The notes: generated by a model from the sequence alone, not told the origin. 64,000 bases of DNA from Octopus bimaculoides (GCF_001194135.2 NC_068996.1:8243683-8307682), one strand, 5' to 3'; positions 3,271-62,745 are shown, counted from the stretch's first letter. Translations and numbers: made by a program.

Positions 3271-3420
3271 ATGATGTACAAAAACAGGAACGAACTCACA
3301 TAACATTTGGTAGCAAAATGTAACTCATGACGCAAAAGATTGTTCAGCTAGAAGTGGTGTTGCCAAATTCCCATTTGAAATATATAGTTTTCAAAGTGAC
3401 AACTACTCACTGATCTATAA

Positions 3421-6678: not shown

Positions 6679-6904
6679 AGCAGTGAGCTGGCAAAAACGT
6701 TAGCACGCCGGGCGAAATGCTTAGTAGTATTCCATCTGCCGCTACGTTCTGAGTTCCAATTCTGCCGAGGTCGATTTTGCCTTTCATCCTTTCGGGGTCG
6801 ATTAAATAAGTACCAGTTACGCACTGGGGTCGATATAATTGACTTAATCCGTTTGTCTGTCTTTGTTTGTCCCCTCTGTGTGTAGTACCTTGTGGGCAGT
6901 AAAG

Positions 6905-6910
<6 letters not shown>
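6679..6910 (+). mobile_element. tRNA-derived SINE family B, tail type B1, within a (CA)n tract
   Basis: gagctggcaaaaacgttagc...gttctgagttccaattc...cctttcatcctttcggggtcgat...tttgtcccctctgtgtgtagtaccttgtgggcagtaaagaaataa. Confidence 0.9.
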
Positions 6911-7509: not shown

Positions 7510-7576
<67 letters not shown>

Positions 7577-8106
7577 NNNNNNNNNNNNNNNNNNNNNNNN
7601 NNNNNNNNNNNNNNNNNNNNNNNNNNNNNNNNNNNNNNNNNNNNNNNNNNNNNNNNNNNNNNNNNNNNNNNNNNNNNNNNNNNNNNNNNNNNNNNNNNNN
7701 NNNNNNNNNNNNNNNNNNNNNNNNNNNNNNNNNNNNNNNNNNNNNNNNNNNNNNNNNNNNNNNNNNNNNNNNNNNNNNNNNNNNNNNNNNNNNNNNNNNN
7801 NNNNNNNNNNNNNNNNNNNNNNNNNNNNNNNNNNNNNNNNNNNNNNNNNNNNNNNNNNNNNNNNNNNNNNNNNNNNNNNNNNNNNNNNNNNNNNNNNNNN
7901 NNNNNNNNNNNNNNNNNNNNNNNNNNNNNNNNNNNNNNNNNNNNNNNNNNNNNNNNNNNNNNNNNNNNNNNNNNNNNNNNNNNNNNNNNNNNNNNNNNNN
8001 NNNNNNNNNNNNNNNNNNNNNNNNNNNNNNNNNNNNNNNNNNNNNNNNNNNNNNNNNNNNNNNNNNNNNNNNNNNNNNNNNNNNNNNNNNNNNNNNNNNN
8101 NNNNNN

Positions 8107-8418
8107 CCCAGTGTTTGACTGTTCCATATGAAGGAGCATTGTCTGTTAAGGTTCTCACCATATCTTCATGGATTTCTGATGGAGTCATGCCTTTCAAATG
8201 AAGCTACTTTATGACAGCACGATACTCAGTTTTCTCCATTTTCCTTGTAAATTCGAAACTCGTTTATTCAAAAATCTCCAACAAAAAAATTTTAAATATC
8301 AAAATCATGAAAATGAGCAAGAATACTCCGAAAAGACTGTACTTAACAGAAAAAATTGTTTCAGCTACCTAGCAGCCCCGTTTCTAGGTTAGGCTCAAAA
8401 CTTTTCAGACACCCCTCG
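8107..8418 (-). mobile_element. Mariner transposon 5' remnant, truncated by a gap
   Basis: TIR-like TA-CGAGGGGTGTCTGAAAAG (TA at 8419-8420) and N-terminal HTH peptide MKGMTPSEIHEDMVRTLTDNAPSYGTVKHW. Confidence 0.8.
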
Positions 8419-8949
8419 TATATATATTGCTTAGGAATTGTGAAACTAATAACCTAGTGTAGAACTCAATATACGTATATTTCAGAACAAAGTGGTAGAT
8501 GAGTATAGACCAGTAATAAGAAAATGAGATGATACAGCAAAAACAGTGGTTATGTTATGAACTTCATTAGCTTACTGCTGTTTCTGCTTTAAGATGCAGT
8601 GGACTATTTGTTGAGTGCCTGAATAACACCCTAAAGCTTCATTGGAGCCTTGGATATGAAGTGCAATATATTTTGGGAAGGCAATATACAGGGAAGGCAT
8701 TACCAGTGAGAAAGTTATGGAACATTTACATTGATGACTCTGAATTTCTCAACAGTGATTAAATACTCATTACTGTTTATCAACTGTTGCAAGATTAATG
8801 CATGTTTAAAGCATGTATAGCACAAGAGAAAACAATGTTGGTACAACCGTTACTGAATTTTTTGACTGCATACTTTACGTCATTTTGTCATTTAGTGAAT
8901 TCAGCCCTCGGTTTCCAACAATATTGAGATCTACCGTTGTTACTTCTTT

Positions 8950-9072
8950 TTGGCTCTCCCCACTTCTCTCTCTCCCCACTTCTCTCTCTCCCCCCACTTC
9001 TCTCTCTCCCCACTTCTCTCTCTCCCCACTTCTCTCTCTCCCCACTTCTCTCTCTCCCCACTTCTCTCTCTC
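8950..9072. repeat. Pyrimidine-rich minisatellite (ctccccacttctctct, 16-18 bp units)
   Basis: About 7 direct units visible. Confidence 0.9.
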
Positions 9073-9149: not shown

Positions 9150-9330
9150 CTGACCACTACACACATTGTTTTCTCTCCTTGTTTCTTTCTGTGTTCCTTT
9201 CTGTTGAAGTGTGTAGGCTCAAAATGTTAAAGACTTTCTCTATTCCTGAGCGTTATACTAATACATCCATTTGTTGTCTTCACCACCTGTCTTCGTCTGT
9301 TGTTTTTTCGTGAATTCTCCCTATATATAC
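9150..9330 (+). mobile_element. Penelope-like terminal repeat, family 2, with degenerate hammerhead-like core
   Basis: Homologous to 52920-53090; cttt-CTGTTGA-a-gtgt-gtag-gctc-aaaa-tg-tt-aaag at 9197-9232. Confidence 0.5.
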
Positions 9331-9435: not shown

Positions 9436-11420
9436 TACATATATATGTTAATATATATATATATATATATACATATTCATGCAAATAGGAGACATTAAAT
9501 TTGACCAATGAGAAATTCTGTGTGCTTCAGTGCTTATTCATGAAATGTTTACAATACAGACACACAAAATTCTTATTCAGAGAAGTAGCAAGATTGATGA
9601 TGTGTTACACCTTAACAATATTTAAATTATTGATCTTATTCACTCTAGCATGGATCCTGAAAGCAAATTGTGTGAGTATGTGTGTGCCTGCGCGTGCGTA
9701 TATGTGTGTGTACTTTTGTGACTGAAAAATAGCTGTAGAATGATAATAGTAAGTAATGTTTCATCAAGAAACCTAGTAAATTTCTGATTAATTTTAGCTG
9801 GCACATGTGTGGGTGTTTATGAAACCATATACATTTTATTTCTCTTTTGTTTACTTGTTTTACCTTTTGGTTAAATTAAATTAGATATGAAAACTTATCT
9901 CCACCAAATATATCTTTTTTTTTTTTTTTACGTGCAATGTCAATGAAAGTAAACAGATTATCTTTAAAAGAAAAAAAAATTTAGTTTGAATTTATAATTT
10001 GCTTATTTCAGTATTTGAATAACTACTGACTGTCACAAATATCCAAATACTAAAACCGCCTTTCTTTCTTCATTGGAAATCTGATGACTTGCTATAATTA
10101 GCTCAGAGTAGACCAACCACGAGCAGTCAATAGTTTTACTACTTTCTCGTACTAACAAATGACATATAGAATCTACACTACCTTGCTTTGTTTATTTATT
10201 TATTTAATAATTTTTTTTTTCATGTCTGATATGTCATTTGAATTTATATGCCATGTTGCTTCCTGCAAGAATATTCCTTACTAAGTTACTCTTGATTTTT
10301 TTTTTTTTTTTTTCAGTTTTCTTTCTAGATCTTTTCCTTACTTTAAAATGCTCATTATTTATTTATTTATATATTTACTTACTTTTTGAATTTCATTTGT
10401 CCCCCCCCCCTCCATCTCCGTTTCTCTCACACTTCTTTTCAAACCTAATCTATGTAGTTTCATCTTTGTTTCTAAACGATGAGTCATAACATACCACACA
10501 TTCATTGCACTTCACAAACACACAAGCACGCATGCGCATGCTGTGGTTTATGAATATTCTGCTACATAAACACTCACAAAAGCTTGAATGCAGAAATATT
10601 TTGTTACACAAACTCTCTGCTACCTGACAACTATAGCTGGTTATGTTACCAAAAGTATTGATCTGTTCTCAAGTTCAGAAGTCAAAATTTTCATACAGCT
10701 GATACGTATTAGTCACTTATGACTAATATAGCTTCATGCTTCTACCTCATCGAAGCAGTCTTTGTTGAATGACTCTCGTTGCAGTTAACCATAATCAAAC
10801 TTTGCCTTTTATTCCTTAGTGGTTTCAGCCTTTTTGTCTCTGGCCATGCTGCAGCACTGTTTTCAAGGGTATTAGTTGATTGTTATTTATTTATGCTACT
10901 CACCTCTGAGGACAATGAACAATAGTCATGAGCAGTCAAAATGCCACAAATTGTTTTTGGTTTGACATGCTGAGGTGCAGTTGTTGGTGTCGCTGTGTGG
11001 TAAAGAAACCTGTTTCCCAACCAGGTGCTTTCAGGTTCAGTTGCACTGCACAGTACCCTGTGCATGTGTCTTTTACTAATGCCATGGAATGACCAAATCC
11101 TTGTGAATGTATTTGATAGTAGAAACTGAAAGAAAATCATCATATGCATATATGTGTGTGTGTTTCTTTGTCTTGGCCTCTCATGATACTTGTAAATGAG
11201 TGTCAACATCATACAAGAAAAGTCATTCATTTACAGTCTTCCTTGAAAACATGTCTGCTAATGGGGAAATGTTACTTTGCTTGGAATTAAGTAAGTGTAG
11301 GTGATATGAAAGGCATCCAGCTGTAAGAAAATCTGCCTCAGTGAATTTTATCTGATCTATGTGACCATAGAAAAGTAGATGTTTAAATAATGATAAATAT
11401 TGAGTACTGTTGTCACATAC

Positions 11421-24298: not shown

Positions 24299-25424
24299 CT
24301 CATACACACATACATGCCCAAGCATGCACACACTTGCCCATATTACATTATGGCATGGTACATTCATCAATCAAGATTTATTGTTCTTTATCAGCCTCTC
24401 CCCTGATCTTGTTCTTTATTAAGTCTTTGGAAGGTTATCCATTGTTCTGCTGTAGATATAAATGTTATGACACTTTCTTGTTTTTTTTTTTTTTTTTTTT
24501 TTTTTTTTGCATTTTTGATTGTTATAGTTGTAGATGTTGAAGATTTCCAAAGACTAACAAAATTATACCATAGCTTCATCTTTAACCTTACTTCTCAAAA
24601 TGCTAAAAATGATAAAATATATGCTTATATATATACTTATAAATTACATGCTTAAATATACAAAAAATGATGAAATACAAGCTTCCCAATTCATCCTTTT
24701 TAATTTCTCATTTGATTCATGTTGATTCATCCATCATCCCTCCCACTCACCTCTAGTGATCATCACTATATTACATCTTAGTCTTTCGGACTTTTACTGA
24801 AAGAATCACAAAAGAAAGACAACTTTTGTATAAGAGTGCCAAATTATGTAATTGTATTGCAGACAGGGGAATTTAGATGTTTCAGGCTGGAGTAGTTATT
24901 ATTCAGAATAACTAGTGTATCAAACTTGAATACATCTATACTGTATTCAGTTTCTTTTCTATGTATTTTCAGCTCAAATCCTGATGTGAGTTTGCATTTC
25001 ATTTTTGTTAGGAATCCATAAAACAATGGGGATATCTTGAAATTAACTAATTTATTGTCCATGCTTGTATTATTATTTATATTATTATTAAAGTAGGGTT
25101 TTGAGCTGGTAAAACCATTAGTATGCAGGGCAAAATGCTTAGCGGCATTTTGTCTGTCTTTATCTTTTTTAGTTCAAATTCCGCTGGGGTTGTCTTTGCC
25201 TTTCCTCCTTTCTGGGTCAGTAAAATAAGTTCCAGTTAAGTACTGGAGTTGATATAATTGGCTTACCCACTCTCCCCACCAAAATTTGAAACTAATATTA
25301 TTATTAAATTTCACCGAGTTCGACTTTGCCTTTCATCCTTTGGTGTTGATAACATAAGTACCAGTTGAACATTGGGGCCAATATAATCACTATCCCCTAT
25401 CTGTAATAGAAAGGATAATTACTA

Positions 25425-25804: not shown

Positions 25805-26011
25805 GGTGGCAAGGTGGCAGAATTGTGAGCATGCCAGACGAAACACTTAGCAGTATTTTGTCTGCCACAACATTCTGAGTTCAAATTCCACCATGGTCAA
25901 CTTTGTCTTTCATCCTTTTGGGGTCAATAAATAAAGTACCAGTGAAGCACTGGGGTCGATGTAATTGACTACTCCCTCCCCACAAATTTCAGGCCTTATG
26001 CCTACAGTAGA

Positions 26012-26053
<42 letters not shown>

Positions 26054-26291
26054 CATCATCATTGTCATTATTATTATTATTAAGGCAGTGAGCTAGTAGA
26101 ATTATTGGCATAGCAGACAAATAAATGCTTGGCAGTATTTTGTTCATCTGTGTGTTCTGAGTTCAAATTCCACCAAAGTCGACTTTGACTTTCATCCTTT
26201 CAGGGTCATTAAAATAAGCACCAGTTGCGTACTGGGGTTGATGTAATTGACTTCCTTCCTTATAATTGCTCATCTTGTACCAAAATTTGAA

Positions 26292-26300
<9 letters not shown>
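25805..26300 (+). mobile_element. Two tandem SINE family B copies with tail type B2, separated by (TTA)n
   Basis: Same head and body as B1 but tail ccctcccccacaaatttcaggccttatgcctacagtagaaagtattatt; other B2 copies at about 25100, 28470, 37080, 42540-42920, 46900-47200, 47535 and 52010. Confidence 0.85.
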
Positions 26301-28196: not shown

Positions 28197-28428
28197 TTAT
28201 TTCTTTACTACCCACAAGGGGCTACACACAGAGGGGACAAACAAGAACAGACAAACGGATTAAGTCGATTATATCGACTCCAGTGCATAACTGGTACTTA
28301 TTTAATCGATCCTGAAAGGATGAAAGGCAAAGTTGACCTTGGTGAAATTTGAACTCAGAATGTAGCAACAGGCGAAATACCACTAAGCATTTTGTCCAGT
28401 GTGCTAACGACTTTGCCAGCTCATCACC
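28197..28428 (-). mobile_element. SINE family B, tail B1
   Basis: Reverse complement of the 6679-6910 family; 3' end abuts a (TG)n tract. Confidence 0.9.
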
Positions 28429-31888: not shown

Positions 31889-32815
31889 CTAGCAGACATA
31901 CCTGGCATTGCTTGGGATTTAAATGGCATAGTTTGTATATATGATACAGTTAGGTGAAACATGTGATACAGGGAAGTACAACATTAAAGCTAAAACATTT
32001 GATGAGTAAATGAAGGGCTAATTCGACTGACATATTGTGCATCTGTTTGGAAGATCCCAGGCCCTAACCTTGTCATGGAAAAGTGGGTGGTGGGTATGTA
32101 ATTTTTGAATGCATCAAAAAGCTCTCGGTGAATATACACACCTTTGTGGCTGTTGGCGCTGCCGCTGCCATGCTGAGCAATCAGCAGACATAGGAATTAC
32201 ATCTGTGTGATAAATTAAACCTGTGGATGTGCTCAACAGCACCACATGAGAGAAATCTACATGAAAGAAATGACATGGTAAGTGGGGGTGGGATTGGCTG
32301 AATCTGTTAATGCAGCATTCCTGGCCAGGCAAATACTACACTGCTCATTGCTTTCCATTGCTCTTGCAGTAGCTGTACATGCAACATTTTGTGATTGTCT
32401 AATTGAAATCTCATGTGATGATCGATTTCTTCTCCTTCTTTTCAATTTCTCTGCTACTGCTGTTTTTCGACCAATTATTATGTGAAGAAATATGATGTAA
32501 TAAACTAAGATGGCAATTGTACATTAATAATTAAATGCCAATAAAAAAAGGTAAATAATATCAATATCTCAGCAAATTTAAAGAAAAGTTACTTTGCAAA
32601 GAGTTACTCCCCTTCTCCACAGCAGTCATATGTACCCAGAAAAGGGGGTTTTCTGGCCCCAGAGGCTCCATTACGCATTATGTGAAAAATTCTAAGAGTC
32701 TGGAACATAAGTAACGTATGTTCCAAGTTTGAAGAAAATCGGTTGTGAACTTTAGAAGTTTTGTAGGTTTACACACACACACACGCACACATATACTGAG
32801 TTTTATATATATAGA
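31889..32815 (-). mobile_element. Non-autonomous Helitron, 927 bp
   Basis: Minus strand begins TCTATATATATAAAA after an A (32816) and ends CTAG before a T (31888); degenerate GC-rich subterminal hairpin cccaagcaatgccagg about 12 nt from the 3' end; no TSD. Confidence 0.8.
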
Positions 32816-33300: not shown

Positions 33301-33532
33301 TTATTTCTTTACTACCCACAAGGGGCTACACACAGAGGGAACAAACAAGGACAGACAAATGGATTAAGTCGATTATATCGACCCCAGTGCGTAACTGGTA
33401 CTTATTTAATCGACCACGAAAGGATGAAAGGCAAAGTCAACCTCAGCGGAATTTGAACTCAGAACGTAGCAGCAGATGAAATACCGCTAAGCATTTCGCC
33501 CGGTGTGCTAACGTTTCTGCCAGCTCGCCGCC
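33301..33532 (-). mobile_element. SINE family B, tail B1, full length with 9-bp TSD
   Basis: ttatgtgtg at 33292-33300 and 33533-33541; complete head ggcggcgagctggcagaaacgttagc. Confidence 0.92.

Positions 33533-41937: not shown

Positions 41938-41970
<33 letters not shown>
41590..41970. repeat. Low-complexity (GAT/GGT/AGT/AAT)n trinucleotide field; similar field at 42920-43340
   Basis: Directly visible. Confidence 0.9.
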
Positions 41971-41974
<4 letters not shown>

Positions 41975-42515
41975 TCTGGTTTTATTGGCCACAAGGGCTA
42001 ATATAAAACAAAAAATGTAAGGACAAACATAGGACGAAATGTACAAAGGGTTTTGCGAAAAAGAAAGAGGTCTGTGTAAACATTAAAAATACAGCGAAAA
42101 ATATAACAAATAAAACTCTCGATAGGGGGAGGCGCTTTGAAAGGTTACTCATGGAAAAACCCATGAAAGCCACGGGAGCCTGGTCAAATGGGGAGAGAGC
42201 CCCTTCTCCTTTTATATTACCTTTTCTTTTTACAGGTGTAACCTCAGAATTGGTCTGTTTATACCGGCCATTTTACCAACATTCACCCACCTTTCAATAA
42301 ATTTGCTACGAGACAGCACTTCCCTCTCTACTCTCATCTTCCTTTTCAAGTGGACCTTGAAAAAGTTGATGAGGCCTTGGCCAAAGAGGAAAGTGTCTGA
42401 CTTTAGCCCTTTCAAATGGGTCCACCATACCACCTCTTTCACTGCAGCCACCAGGCAAATGAAAATTGCCTTGCCCTTCCGGTTAAAGGAGGTCGGCGGG
42501 GCAATCTTCACTTTT
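41971..42515 (-). mobile_element. Tx1/L1-like LINE 3' fragment (ORF2 C-terminus, 3' UTR, AATAAA, (ATT)n tail)
   Basis: KAIFICLVAAVKEVVWWTHLKGL...FFKVHLKRKMRVEREVLSRSKFIERWV then a T-rich UTR ending gcccttgtggccaataaaaccagaattt; (AAT)n on both flanks. Confidence 0.75.
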
Positions 42516-42928
42516 ATAATAATAATAATAATAATAATAATAATCTTTTCTACTAAAAGCACAAGGCCTGAAATTTGGTGGTGGTGGTGGTGGTTAAATT
42601 GATTACATTGACCCCAGTGTGTAACTGGTACTTAATTTATTGACCCCGAATGGATGTAAAGCAAAGTTGACCTTGGTGGAATATAATAATAATAATGATA
42701 ATGATCCTTTCTACTATAGGCACAAAGCCCGGATTTCTGTGGAGAGGGGGACAGTTGATCGCATCGACCCAGTACTCAACTGGTACTTAATTTATCGACC
42801 CTGAGAGGATGAAAGGCAAAGTTGACCTGGGCAGAATTTGAACTCAGAACGTAGCGATTGGCAAAATACTGCTAAGCATGTTGTTGAGCATGCTAACGAT
42901 TCTGCCCACTTGCCACCTTGATATAATG

Positions 42929-42972
<44 letters not shown>

Positions 42973-46789: not shown

Positions 46790-47710
46790 AATGATTTCTT
46801 AGATATTGGCACAAGACGTCAAATATTTTAGGCAGAAGAGTATATTCTTCAATATCAATCCTTAATACCTTGCCGGTACTTATTTTATCACCTTTTCCTT
46901 TGAAAGATGAGAAAGCTATGCCTGGCTTGGCAAGATTTGAACTCAGAATTTGTATTTGCCAGAGACGATTTTTAAAAGGAGAATATCTGAGTTCAAATTC
47001 TGTTGTTGCCAGAATCATTACACTATCATTACACTATCTAGCTCTTTACATTCTGAGTTGGGGTATTGTTGAGGTCAGCTTTCCTTTTCATTCTTTTGGG
47101 GGGACAATAGAATAAAAAGTATCAGTTAACTAGGCTTTGGTGTGATTGACTAACTCCTAGCCTCAAAATATCTGGTCTTGTGCCTAAATTAGAAGCTACC
47201 ATTATTCGACAAGTGGTTTGTCAGAATTGCTAGAACAATGAACAAAATACCCTGGGATATTCCTTCAGGCTCTTTACAAAGGTCGACTTTACTTTTTATC
47301 CTTTTGGAGTTTGATCTAGTACTGAACAAGAATTCTGGATTATTCCATTTTGTTTTACGCAATTTTTGAGAATGGTTTGGTTCATTTTTAGTATTCGTGT
47401 TTGTGAGAGCAGTTGAATTTATTTAAGATATTCTCCTTTTAAAAATCGTCTCTGGCTAATCGTTGAGAGGACGTTGGTGTTGCCTTGGCAAAGGTTTACG
47501 CTCTCTGAGTACTCTTATTATTATTATTATTATTACTGGCATTTCGTCTGCTTTGATGTTCTGAGTTCAAATTCTGCTGAAATTGACTTCGCCTTTCGTC
47601 CTTTCGGAGTTGATGAATTAAGTACCAGTCAAGTATAGGGTTGATGTGAATGACTTATCCTCTCCCCCAAATTTCAGGCCTTGTGCCTATAGTAGAAAGC
47701 ATTATCATCA

Positions 47711-51503: not shown

Positions 51504-52919
51504 TAAATACCCATGCAAGTGTATGGACTTAGTGAAAGTGAATGCTTCTTGGCTGTTGATGAGAGAATTGCAGGTTTCATGTTTGCCACTGAGCCACACT
51601 TATGATACTGCGACATGAAAATTTGGCCTAATTCTTAGGTCAATGTTTTACACTCAACAACAATACATGGCTGCCAAAACTAAAAGCAAAAAAAAAACAA
51701 ACAAACAAAAACGTCTGAGCTTGCTCTCCCTCCCCCCCCCTCTCTCTCTCTCTCACACACACATGTACAAAAGTAAAAGAAATGATTGGTGACAAGAGGA
51801 GAAAGAAAAGATAAATACTGCAACTGATACCTTATAACAGCTGTTAGTTGTTATACTCTGCCAGATTCAGCTGGTGTCCAAGTTTTCACCCTGTCAATAT
51901 ATCATAGCTCTGGGTTAATTTATTTGATTGCTGGTCACTTCATGTAGCTTCATGTTATGTATATAGCAACTGCGGCTGTTGTTGTTGATTATTATTCACC
52001 ACTGGCCTAAGGTGGTGAGATGACAGAATCATTAGCATGCCAGGAAAAATGCTTCGCAGCATTTTGTTTGTTGTTACATTCTGAGTTCAAATTCCACTGG
52101 GGTTGACTTTGCCTTTCATCCGTTCAGGGTTGATAAAATAAGCACCTATTGAACACTGGGGTCGATGTAATTGACTGTCCCCTCCCCCCAAATATCAGGC
52201 CTTGTGCCTATTGTAGAAAGGGTTGTTCAGACTGGTTTGGTTTGTAATTTCTTGGTTCAGGCACAACTGCAAAATGAAGTGTATCTTGTATCTTCAGGGT
52301 GGGCTCTTTAGTGTCTTCACTTTTTCTTGCTTGAACTGAAGGGGAAGTTGTTATTATTAGTTCTCAAAGAGATGTTGCACCCATCCTGTGCAAATAAACG
52401 CCGACGCAGCCGACAGCTCTTTGATAACCTCTGGCTTGTAGCTCTTGTAACTCTTGTGTTCCTCATTGCCACCCTATCATTACAATTATTTTACAGACAT
52501 CTTATGGTTTTTTTCCCTCTCATTAGAAGCCCCTCCTCTTCCTCTTTATCACCACCACTACCACCAAGATTAGTATTAACATCATCACCATGACAACTGA
52601 TCCAGTAACATTATCTTATCATCATCATTACTACCACCACAACCATCACCACCACCACCACCACCACCACCACCATCGTTATGTGCATACCGTTCCATGC
52701 CAGCATGGTTCTGACGGGTTTCTTTGGCAATGTTTTATGACTGGATTCCCTTCTTGCTGCCACCATTTTAATCACCTCTTGTGACACACGAAAATATTAC
52801 ACCTGTTTTAATGCTGGAATACACAATACATACATACATACATCCATCCATCCATCCATCCATCCATCCATCAATCAATCAATCAATCAATCATGCAGAA
52901 CTGTTAATGTCTACACATT

Positions 52920-60790: not shown

Positions 60791-61809
60791 TTTTATAATG
60801 ATTAACATATATTATGCACTTTATTATGTTTTGTTATATACATGATTCCATCATCTGTGGAAAAAATTCTTACGTGAGACTAGTGCTGAGTGCAAAGAAG
60901 GTTGTGGACTGCTCTCTTAGACAACATCTAAAAGAAAAAAAAAGAAAGAAAAAGAAAAGCTATCTGACTACATGGTATGAAGTTACTCACCTACATATGC
61001 CAAATTCCAATCCTTAGGTGTGATATCTTTTCTCTCTACATTTTTCACCAGTTGGTGTTGTGCCAACCCCATTTGTCACTCTTTTTTTCTCTATACCTTC
61101 TCCACCATACCCCCTGCACTGACCACTACACTCAGTTTTTCTGCCTGGAACACCAACTCATTGGAATTCTTTCTTTGTTGATGCTTTCCTGTGGTCATAC
61201 ACTTGCAATTAAAGGAGCATTTGTCATATTGACCCAATTTTCATATCAGAATACCTACTGAGTCCATGTCCACAACCCTTTCTTCTATGCCCAAATCATG
61301 AGAAAAAAATTATGGTTTAAAAAACAAGACAAAAAATGACAGCAAAATGTGAATCAATTCACTTTTTAATTACTAAAAGATTGATGTAACTTACGCCCTA
61401 CATTAGTGTAAAACATGTCTAAGACATGTTTTAAGTTCTTTCTTTTGTGTGATAGCAAAATCTTCTGAAAGTTAATATCAATTCCCAAGTGGGTCACAAA
61501 ATTTTAATGATATCTACAGCATTGAAAGGTGAGCGAGACCAGGAAGTCTAGTTCACTTCTAGAATAAACCTGATTATATTGTTTTGTTATATTGCTATAG
61601 TTAATCTCTTTCTTTTTAATGTTTCTATTCTGAATGTTCTCTGTTAAATTCCAATGGGTCAACTGACAACAGAGAGTCCTTTGTTATCTTTTTTTTTTTA
61701 ATTGATTTAAATCTTTTACTTAGTTTGTTATTGAATTTTTTTTTAGTTGATTTCTCTTGCATCAGAATGTCGCTATCATACAAGTGGTGTCAGTCATTTC
61801 TAATATTCT

Positions 61810-62020
61810 TAATTCTTATTGCCCACAAGGGGCTAAACATAGAGGGGACAAACAAGGACAGACAAAGGGATTAAGTCGGTTACATCAACCCCAGTGCGCA
61901 ACTGGTACTTAATTTATCGACCCTGTAAGGATGAAAGGCAAAGTCGACCTCGGCGGAATTTGAACTCAGAACGTAACGGCAGACAAAATACTGCTAAGCA
62001 TTTCACCCAACTTGCCACCT
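61810..62020 (-). mobile_element. SINE family B, tail B1, with 16-bp TSD
   Basis: tcatttctaatattct at 61794-61809 and 62021-62036. Confidence 0.9.
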
Positions 62021-62745
62021 TCATTTCTAATATTCTGCAGAAACCTGTTTGGTCAAGGAGAAATATTACTTTACATTGAAATGGTTAAAGTTTGTGACAA
62101 AAAAGAGCATCTAGCTGTAGAAAATTTGATTCAGTCAACTTTATCTGGCCCTTGCAAGCATAGATATGTGGCTGTTTAAAATGATGATGATGATGGTTTG
62201 TGAATGTTTATAATATAGAATTTTATCTCTTCTTGGTGTAAATACCAGACACTATTTTAGGAAGTAAGCACTATCCACTCTGTCAGGAAGGGAACTTTAG
62301 CTGTTCTGTTACATATGAACCCCAGTTTAATCTATGCTATCAACCCCTCTCTCACAAAGTGGGCAGCTGCTTATCCATCAAGATGCAGGTACCTGCTTAT
62401 GTCAGGAAATGGGCACCTGCATATTTGTCGGAAAGTAGGTATCGGTCATTGTCACCATGTGGACACTGTCCACTGTGGGAAGTGGACACCTGTTTATTTG
62501 TCAGGTGGCTGGAAGCATGCCAGACTGTCTACCGCTAAGTAGATACCAGTAACTTTGTCACATGGGCACTAATCCAGTCTGTAGGAAGTGGACAGCTGTT
62601 GATCTGACACAGAGTTAACCCCAACCCCTTTGTCACAAATATATTTTCCAGTTTTATGAACTGGGAAAAAAAAAAAAGTGCAATGCTCTCATTAGTGTTT
62701 GAACTCATGACTTACTTATTACTGTGTTGCATCTTTTCTTGACAG

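Follow-up and report, generated by a model that had tools for sequence, protein, structure and literature searches.

Do the short interspersed elements (SINEs) of octopods take their 3' ends from an L1-type LINE, and is that LINE their copier? The question arises in a stretch of 64,000 nucleotides of Octopus bimaculoides DNA (hereafter the window), where a fragment of an L1/Tx1-group LINE and several copies of a SINE, termed SINE B1, finish in similar sequence. Shared 3' tails between SINEs and LINEs are textbook for CR1, L2 and RTE. The initial annotation of the window proposed that the LINE and SINE B1 form a partner pair, and sequence evidence from several sources and two genera supports that proposal (shuffled controls, further LINE 3' ends, and the tails of Argonauta elements). 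With a probability of about 0.8, judged from sequence comparison, SINE B1 owes its last ~45-70 nt to the 3' end of an octopod L1-group LINE family, most likely of the Tx1 clade, and still has them in common with it.

The DNA of the window is of animal type, AT-rich, rich in microsatellites and interrupted by many gaps. The LINE fragment and the SINE copy used for most comparisons both lie on the minus strand, and their 3' ends therefore lie at low coordinates. The parts of the LINE copy are as follows.

41972..42515, minus strand: 5'-truncated copy of an L1/Tx1-group LINE, comprising the end of ORF2 and the whole 3' UTR (from reading of the sequence and tblastn with family proteins).
42233..42514, minus strand: remnant of the ORF2 C-terminus, 94 codons, recognized by its phmmer relatives; the stop codon is at 42230-42232.
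41972..42229, minus strand: LINE 3' UTR of 258 nt, alignable with those of six further LINE copies.
42021..42052, minus strand: upstream colinear blocks CCCTTTGT and TCCTATGTTTGTCC, also present in the B1 tail (alignment and pattern search).
41981..41999, minus strand: terminal motif AGCCCTTGTGGCCAATAAA of the tail, in which AAUAAA comes after a small, probable hairpin (GCC-CUUGU-GGC); this is the core common to the SINE tails (pattern search and pair counts).
41940..41971, minus strand: (TTA)n simple repeat immediately after the LINE 3' end, read as (TAA)n on the plus strand (from the sequence).

The initial annotation had called this element a LINE. Its identity as a LINE stands, but the element is merely a 5'-truncated piece of ~545 bp and the family's only fragment in the window: tblastn with the family proteins gave a sole match, at 42233-42502 on the minus strand, with 67-70% identity to the family members P0142 and P0127. 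The 3' UTR terminates in ...TTAGCCCTTGTGGCCAATAAAACCAGAATT, ahead of the (TTA)n run. The LINE copy and the B1 copies of the window are all old and degraded.

The 94-residue ORF2 fragment has no Pfam match of its own and found nothing in a word-indexed protein search; a full HMMER search (phmmer) recovered 126 relatives, the best with E=5.6e-36 and 70% identity. Longer members of the family, with 540-912 aa, come from metagenome and Logan contigs, from Argonauta hians and from Octopus sinensis. The zf-RVT domain (PF13966) is present in the longer relatives P0001, P0071, P0062, P0057 and P0111, the last of which additionally has RVT_1, and the window fragment begins downstream of the C-terminal CCHC zinc-binding motif seen in these relatives (zf-RVT). 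A profile of 20 family members, compared with PDB, matched residues 534-943 of human L1 ORF2p (RT palm, thumb and the start of the wrist) with E=2.7e-55 and, weakly, its CCHC region at 1123-1162; R2 proteins reached 1e-23 at most. P0111 matched human L1 ORF2p with 1.7e-47. In a fold search with an AlphaFold model of the C-terminal 360 aa (pLDDT 72), L1 ORF2p ranked first (E=4e-6) and R2 next (0.037), at a low TM-score of 0.37. An APE-type endonuclease (Exo_endo_phos) was found only in more distant relatives (P0164 and P0166, ~49% identity), the closest recovered members being 5'-truncated.

Together, the zf-RVT and RVT_1 domains of the relatives, the profile match to L1 ORF2p and the C-terminal fold search support placement of the LINE in the L1 group (L1 and Tx1 clades), and it is at this level that the earlier label "Tx1/L1-like" holds. 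Dong, an element of the R4 clade that targets (TAA)n, was also considered, as the LINE sits in (TTA)n, and was ruled out in view of the L1-like protein. The L1-group LINEs reported from these animals are given as Tx1 in tree-based surveys of molluscs (PMC10294476) and as L1-Tx1 in annotations of octopus (PMC13282606, PMC8967140). A related-locus search with alignment A2 found no relative in the metagenome contig and genome contig collections, which seem to be without octopod DNA. Close relatives also occur in JGI and ENA metagenome contigs, and P0131, an octopod-type ORF2 fragment of the family, has the record title [quoted passage not shown]; contamination of bins and assemblies by host DNA is the probable source of all of these.

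All four SINE B1 copies reported by the initial annotation were found.

61810..62020, minus strand: SINE B1 copy with a LINE-like tail at ~61810-61880; of the window copies it is nearest to the LINE tails (83% identity, 39/47, to the O. sinensis LINE tail).
61794-61809 (3' copy) and 62021-62036 (5' copy), minus strand: exact 16-bp target-site duplication AGAATATTAGAAATGA of the preceding element (exact string search).
33301..33532, minus strand: SINE B1 copy whose tail ends ...CCCCTTGTGGGTAGTAAAGAAATAA, with CACACAT(AA) on either side.
6680..6910, plus strand: SINE B1 copy with (CA)n on either side.
28197..28428, minus strand: SINE B1 copy with (CA)n confined to its 3' side.

The SINEs are short (~210-232 bp) and non-coding, and the 64 kb hold, besides the four B1 copies, at least seven copies of other subfamilies. 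Identity of the B1 copies to that at 61810 is ~85-88%. All copies show a B-box-like GAGTTCAAATTCC; ARAGORN found no tRNA in the window, and Rfam gave no tRNA match in the 33301 copy. Target-site duplications of 9 and 16 bp had been claimed for B1: the longer is exact at the 61810 copy, and the 33301 copy has one of 7-10 bp, CACACAT(AA). Three of the four copies are directly followed by (CA)n, two of them with (CA)n upstream too, in agreement with the earlier statement that three of four sit in this repeat. As (CA/TG) runs of at least 8 nt make up just 2.1% of the window, this abutment is not due to chance.

The resemblance between the two elements consists, as first described, of three colinear blocks ending at one terminus, the minus strand being the sense of both elements. 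Read in this sense, the LINE finishes ...AAACCCTTTGT..GTCCTATGTTTGTCC..TTAGCCCTTGTGGCCAATAAAACCAGAATT(TAT)n, with its end at ~41972, and the SINE finishes ...AATCCCTTTGTCTGTCCTTGTTTGTCCCC..TTTAGCCCCTTGTGGGCAATAAGAATTA, with its end at 61810. The terminal 116 nt of the LINE align with the 61810 SINE tail at a local score of 62, and none of 2000 dinucleotide shuffles attains it (27.1 ± 4.4, maximum 50). The LINE tail scores 49 against the four-copy B1 consensus, compared with 23.3 ± 3.9 in shuffles; ~0.5% of random window segments attain this consensus score, which is approximately the estimated share of the four B1 tails in the window. Over these comparisons of the window LINE with B1, z is about 5.6-8 (0/2000 shuffles), and the similarity is thus significant against shuffled controls. 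A pattern for the terminal 18-mer has six matches in the window where 0.2 are expected: the LINE end, the four B1 tails, and an unrelated site with three mismatches at 32650.

The tail sample is small and comprises four B1 copies and eight LINE 3' ends, all of the latter from one L1-group family. The LINE ends from outside the window were obtained by exact-protein look-ups of family members; the contigs L001 and L007 stop short of the LINE tail and contribute no 3' end. Where a simple repeat follows the terminus, its coordinates in the contig are given in brackets.

L002, Octopus sinensis chromosome: 3' end ...TTGTCCCCCTCTATGTTTGGGCCCTTGTGGCTAATAAAGAAAT.
L003, JGI contig with an ORF bearing RVT_1 and zf-RVT: 3' end ...TTCCGGGCCCTTGTGGCCAATAAAAGAAATC(ATT)n (2020-2105).
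L004, ENA: 3' end ...CCTCTTGTGGCCAATCAA(CA)4 (1762-1781), then the contig end.
L005, Logan: 3' end ...CACCCTTGCAGCAAATAAATAAAATC(GTT)n (3307-3328).
L006, Logan: 3' end ...GGGCCTTTGTAGCCAATAAAAGAAATC(ATC)n (2497-2510).
L008, Argonauta hians, two ends: ...CAGCCAGGTGGCTAAGAAAGAAAT and ...CGGCCCTTGTGGCTAATAAAGAAATCTAT.

All seven of these ends have recognizable forms of the terminal motif GGCCCTTGTGGCYAATAAAGAAAT, diverged in L004, L005 and the 7286 end of L008, so that the motif is recognizable in 8/8 LINE 3' ends seen, from at least four sources. Conservation in a MAFFT alignment of seven 3' UTRs is highest over the final 20 columns (pair identity 0.65 vs 0.05-0.47 elsewhere). The tail is conserved within the LINE family, and the terminal motif is kept across LINE lineages as distant as 48% protein identity; the more diverged copies L004, L005 and L006 have only the terminal ~20 nt in common with B1. 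The O. sinensis LINE end reaches z=8.5 against the B1 consensus. When the 12.8-kb O. sinensis locus was scanned in sliding windows with the B1 tail, the top match was exactly the LINE 3' end (65 vs a 99th percentile of 30), and in L003 the top match was likewise the LINE 3' end. In the negative control L009, a related EN+RT LINE of another organism, the motif is absent and the sliding scan gave no signal. A DNA scan of metagenome contigs with the B1 tail gave one match (L010), by chance in an apparent bacterial membrane-protein gene.

The second genus is represented by a 12-kb locus of Argonauta hians, in which, as in the window, the LINE and homologous SINEs occur together.

L008 (BAAFZT010000001.1): tail-bearing elements at 121-199, 8616-8694, 8882-8960, 9231-9309, 9985-10063, 10235-10313 and 7575-7653.

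These seven tail motifs, which are additional to the LINE end, belong to one LINE copy reduced to its 3' UTR, three B1-like SINEs, and three members of another SINE-like family. The three B1-like SINEs have the B1 architecture: a head with a GTTCGAATC-type box, a body ...GGATCGATGAAACAAGTACCAGT...GGGGTCGATGGTATCGAC, and then the tail. The second family has a different head (...GGTTCAATC...) and the same tail. All six SINE tails finish ...GGCCCTTGTGGCNAATAGAGAAATCTAT or a close variant, and identity to the LINE tail of Argonauta, ...GGCCCTTGTGGCTAATAAAGAAATCTAT, is 82-87% in the five that were compared. The SINE and LINE tails of Argonauta moreover share lineage-specific states (CGGCC..., ...GAAATCTAT) that are absent from Octopus-type sequences. 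SINE and LINE tails thus co-vary by lineage, which is a prediction of an ongoing or repeatedly renewed partnership. The locus also suggests that tail-sharing retroposons are very dense in Argonauta.

Other SINE subfamilies in the window bear on the form of the tail. The second subfamily, SINE-A, is found at the following positions.

42703-42919 (full) and 42542-42682 (partial), minus strand: SINE-A copies arranged head-to-tail just upstream of the LINE fragment and in its orientation, both trailed by (ATT)n.
25840-25977, 52047-52176, 47541-47657, 42594-42682 and 42768-42879, together with ~60 nt 3' of each: SINE-A matches.

SINE-A has a B1-like head and body and a tail ...CCCCAAATTTCAGGCCTTGTGCCTATAGTAGAAAG, followed by (ATT)n in four of five copies; the tail of the array copies reads CAGGCCTTGTGCCTATAGTAGAAAG(ATT)n. 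With AGGC/GCCT enclosing the same CTTGT loop, its stem amounts to a compensated form of the LINE hairpin, and the similarity of its tail to LINE tails is marginal (z from 0.3 to 5). The SINE-A tail may be a diverged form of the LINE hairpin tail. A third tail type occurs on the same SINE body at 26123-26300 and 25133-25300 (plus strand), reading ...CCAAAATTTGAAAC and then (CCA)n/(TCA)n or (ATT)n. Two open frames of the window may also stem from mobile elements. One, of 259 aa at 2193-2972 on the minus strand, has a CCHC-like ...CFKCGEKG... near its C-terminus, has no Pfam match and no exact match on record, and may be a gag/ORF1-like remnant of another retroelement. The other is a short frame beside an assembly gap at 8110-8197 (minus strand); it reads MKGMTPSEIHEDMVRTLTDNAPSYGTVKHW, presumably a likeness of the N-terminal helix-turn-helix of mariner-type transposases.

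In every tail a stem of 4 bp can form, enclosing a CTTGT loop that does not vary. The stem is GGCC/GGCC or GGCC/GGCT in the LINEs and the Argonauta SINEs, and GCCC/GGGC or GCCC/GGGT in B1. Among 15 sequences, 91.7% of cells pair, compared with 82.8 ± 2.7% in shuffles (1/500) and 8-47% in slid controls, and the covariation score is 0.317 vs 0.166 (0/500 shuffles). With the five SINE-A tails added, pairing is 93.8% vs 76.6% (0/500), and two pairs are changed on both sides. The compensatory changes may represent one or two evolutionary events, and by these counts the 4-bp hairpin is likely to be real but is not established. Folding energies of whole tails (~75-100 nt) are no better than those of shuffles, with z from -1.0 to +0.9, and no large structure is therefore claimed. 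The initial annotation had proposed both aligning and folding the tails; the alignment proved significant, and the whole-tail fold did not go beyond shuffles.

The simple repeats that follow the LINE terminus differ by copy, which suggests either that the last template bases are reiterated or that the tails are lineage-specific. After the tail, B1 has (CA)n or nothing, SINE-A mostly (ATT)n, and the Argonauta copies no microsatellite. At the 33301 copy the target-site duplication includes the CA run, which therefore comes from the target; over the B1 copies, (CA)n may be carried by the element as a 3' repeat, may reflect a preferred target, or both. The repeat data fit slippage on the RNA end as well as annealing to target microsatellites. 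Microsatellite-specific elements include Kibi ((TC)n) and Koshi ((TTC)n) of the Tx1 clade and Dong ((TAA)n) of the R4 clade. Like these, the octopod copies are flanked by simple repeats, and same-orientation octopod arrays are separated by (ATT)n. In contrast to these elements, each of which uses one repeat type, the octopod copies are found with (ATT)n, (ATC)n, (GTT)n or (CA)n, and in Argonauta with none, and for this reason strict target specificity of the Tx1 style is not supported. The minus-strand array at 41940-42960 runs head-to-tail as SINE-A (42703-42919), (ATT)n, partial SINE-A (42542-42682), (ATT)n, LINE (41972-42515) and (TTA)n, an order suggesting that new copies landed in the repeat tails of older ones.

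Because LINE and SINE end in the same ~45-70 bases in two octopod genera, the L1/Tx1-type LINE is, on this sequence evidence, the likely copier of SINE B1. Modelled on experimentally tested pairs of the stringent type, the mechanism would begin with the ORF2 protein binding the 3' end of its own LINE RNA, consisting of the hairpin (GGCC-CUUGU-GGCY), AAUAAAGAAAU and a short simple repeat. The protein would start target-primed reverse transcription there, and a SINE transcript with the same 3' handle would be copied in trans; "stringent" would be the proper term if the protein does recognize the tail. The repeats that trail the shared sequence ((ATT)n, (ATC)n, (GTT)n, (CA)n) could arise from slippage of the reverse transcriptase on the RNA end, from annealing to matching microsatellites at the nicked target, or from both, which would explain the head-to-tail arrays as well as the association with (CA)n.

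Tail sharing shows ancestry, not current dependence, and the strongest competing explanation, although improbable, starts from that distinction. The SINE may have gained its tail long ago by template switching from LINE RNA, its copies being moved by another LINE (RTE, Dong) or in a relaxed mode through the 3' simple repeat alone. Such a history suits the O. bimaculoides repeat library, in which the LINEs with intact ORFs are RTE and Dong and recent activity is that of RTE alone (PMC9115989), and it suits the 3' simple repeats on nearly all Octopus-type copies and the unexceptional folding of the tail. It fits poorly with a terminal motif retained over LINE lineages down to 48% protein identity and in the SINEs of two genera, with the states peculiar to Argonauta that its SINE and LINE tails share where no microsatellite follows, and with the recently active LINEs of O. 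vulgaris, which include L1-Tx1 families (PMC13282606).

Far less probable is the reverse direction, in which this LINE copy or the whole family acquired a SINE tail and the resemblance is silent on the mobilizer. SINE copies do lie directly upstream of the window fragment, and template switching between retroposon RNAs is documented (PMC4824008); however, between its stop codon and its terminus the 3' UTR of the window copy is colinear with those of the other LINE copies and includes no SINE body, the motif is present in eight LINE ends drawn from at least four sources, and several SINE families with different bodies carry it too, for which one LINE donor fits better than one SINE donor. Because LINE ends from other sources carry the tail, because it is the best-conserved part of the 3' UTR, and because the scans of L002 and L003 peak at the LINE end, the window copy is not a chimera that took over the tail of a SINE, the outcome that the initial annotation had named as fatal to the pairing. 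A chance or compositional likeness of two T-rich, low-complexity 3' ends with AATAAA is close to negligible: both regions are AT/T-rich, AATAAA is a common signal, and blastn (word size 7, E<1e-3) did not report the LINE/B1 tail pair, but no dinucleotide shuffle attained the observed score, the shared core CCCTTGTGG lies outside AATAAA, five of the six motif matches are the LINE tail and the four B1 tails, and the resemblance recurs independently in O. sinensis and Argonauta while the control locus is without signal.

Descent of the B1 tail from the LINE, the preferred reading, has several relatives among known systems. The eel pair UnaSINE1/UnaL2 was reportedly described by Kajikawa and Okada in 2002. 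In this and other stringent pairs (PMC3747384, Table 1), as in the octopods, the SINE tail runs colinear with the last part of the LINE 3' UTR, and the eel pair has a small stem-loop near the terminus, comparable to the likely octopod hairpin, and terminal short tandem repeats that are thought to involve slippage. UnaL2, however, is of the L2 clade and mobilization in that pair was shown experimentally, whereas for the octopod LINE, of the L1 group, we infer mobilization. Stringent pairs of the L1 clade are ZmSINE2/ZmSINE3 with LINE1-1_ZM (maize, sorghum) and SINEX-3_CR with L1-1_CR (Chlamydomonas) (Ohshima 2012/2013; PMC3472496, PMC3747384). They resemble the octopod pair in an L1-group LINE and, probably, in a conserved 3' hairpin shared with the SINEs and subject to compensatory stem changes; they differ in belonging to plants and algae and in their (T)n or (A)n ends. 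Of the 58 pairs surveyed by Ohshima, those of the L1 clade are confined to maize/sorghum and Chlamydomonas, and neither an animal L1-group pair nor a mollusc pair is listed (PMC3747384).

Among animals, the crocodilian SINEU families, which have snRNA-gene heads, were attributed to Tx1-Mar LINEs by a shared target, the Mariner transposon (Kojima 2015, PMC4494074). There too an animal SINE is assigned to a LINE of the Tx1 clade, the probable clade of the octopod LINE, but the octopod link is a shared 3' tail, not a shared target. Mammalian L1 with Alu, B1 and B2, a relaxed system, has in common with the octopod pair an L1-group reverse transcriptase, target-site duplications of ~7-16 bp and, probably, target-primed insertion of the APE type. 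In the mammalian system poly(A) suffices and no tail is shared with the SINEs, whereas the octopod pair has no poly(A), a specific tail, and repeats other than A. Papers on MetaSINEs and on mollusc "jigsaw" SINEs (PMC4824008 among them) left several mollusc partners unidentified. No published description of the octopod SINE B1/LINE pair was found, and the octopus papers searched name no SINE partner; an annotation in Repbase or Dfam is possible. In published annotations almost all SINE families are unclassified (for O. vulgaris, 893 "unclassified SINE" families; PMC13282606), SINEs are the largest repeat class in Octopus genomes, and an octopus-specific SINE expansion accounts for about a tenth of the genome.

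The pairing of SINE B1 with its LINE is thus real but of a familiar kind, one parasite on another. Its interest would be greater if the same LINE tail underlies most octopod SINE families. We lean against so broad a claim and raise it tentatively: one L1/Tx1-group LINE family would give its 3' handle (a CUUGU-loop hairpin, an A-rich end and a simple repeat) to most of them, candidate users being the (ATT)n-tailed SINE-A of the window and the two Argonauta families. If this is true, stringent L1-group SINE/LINE pairing would have its first example among animals, and insertion of the elements into each other's microsatellite tails would explain the head-to-tail arrays. An animal case would be added to the few tail-recognizing LINEs of the L1 group, which are relevant to the question of whether mammalian L1 inherited its poly(A)-only mode or acquired it secondarily (Ohshima 2012/2013). 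With the tail motif as a practical handle, octopod SINEs may be classified and the LINE lineage active at each burst traced. A named LINE partner is a testable driver of SINE expansion in octopuses and, if the broader claim holds, the octopus-specific expansion would have been driven by a tail-recognizing LINE of the L1 group.
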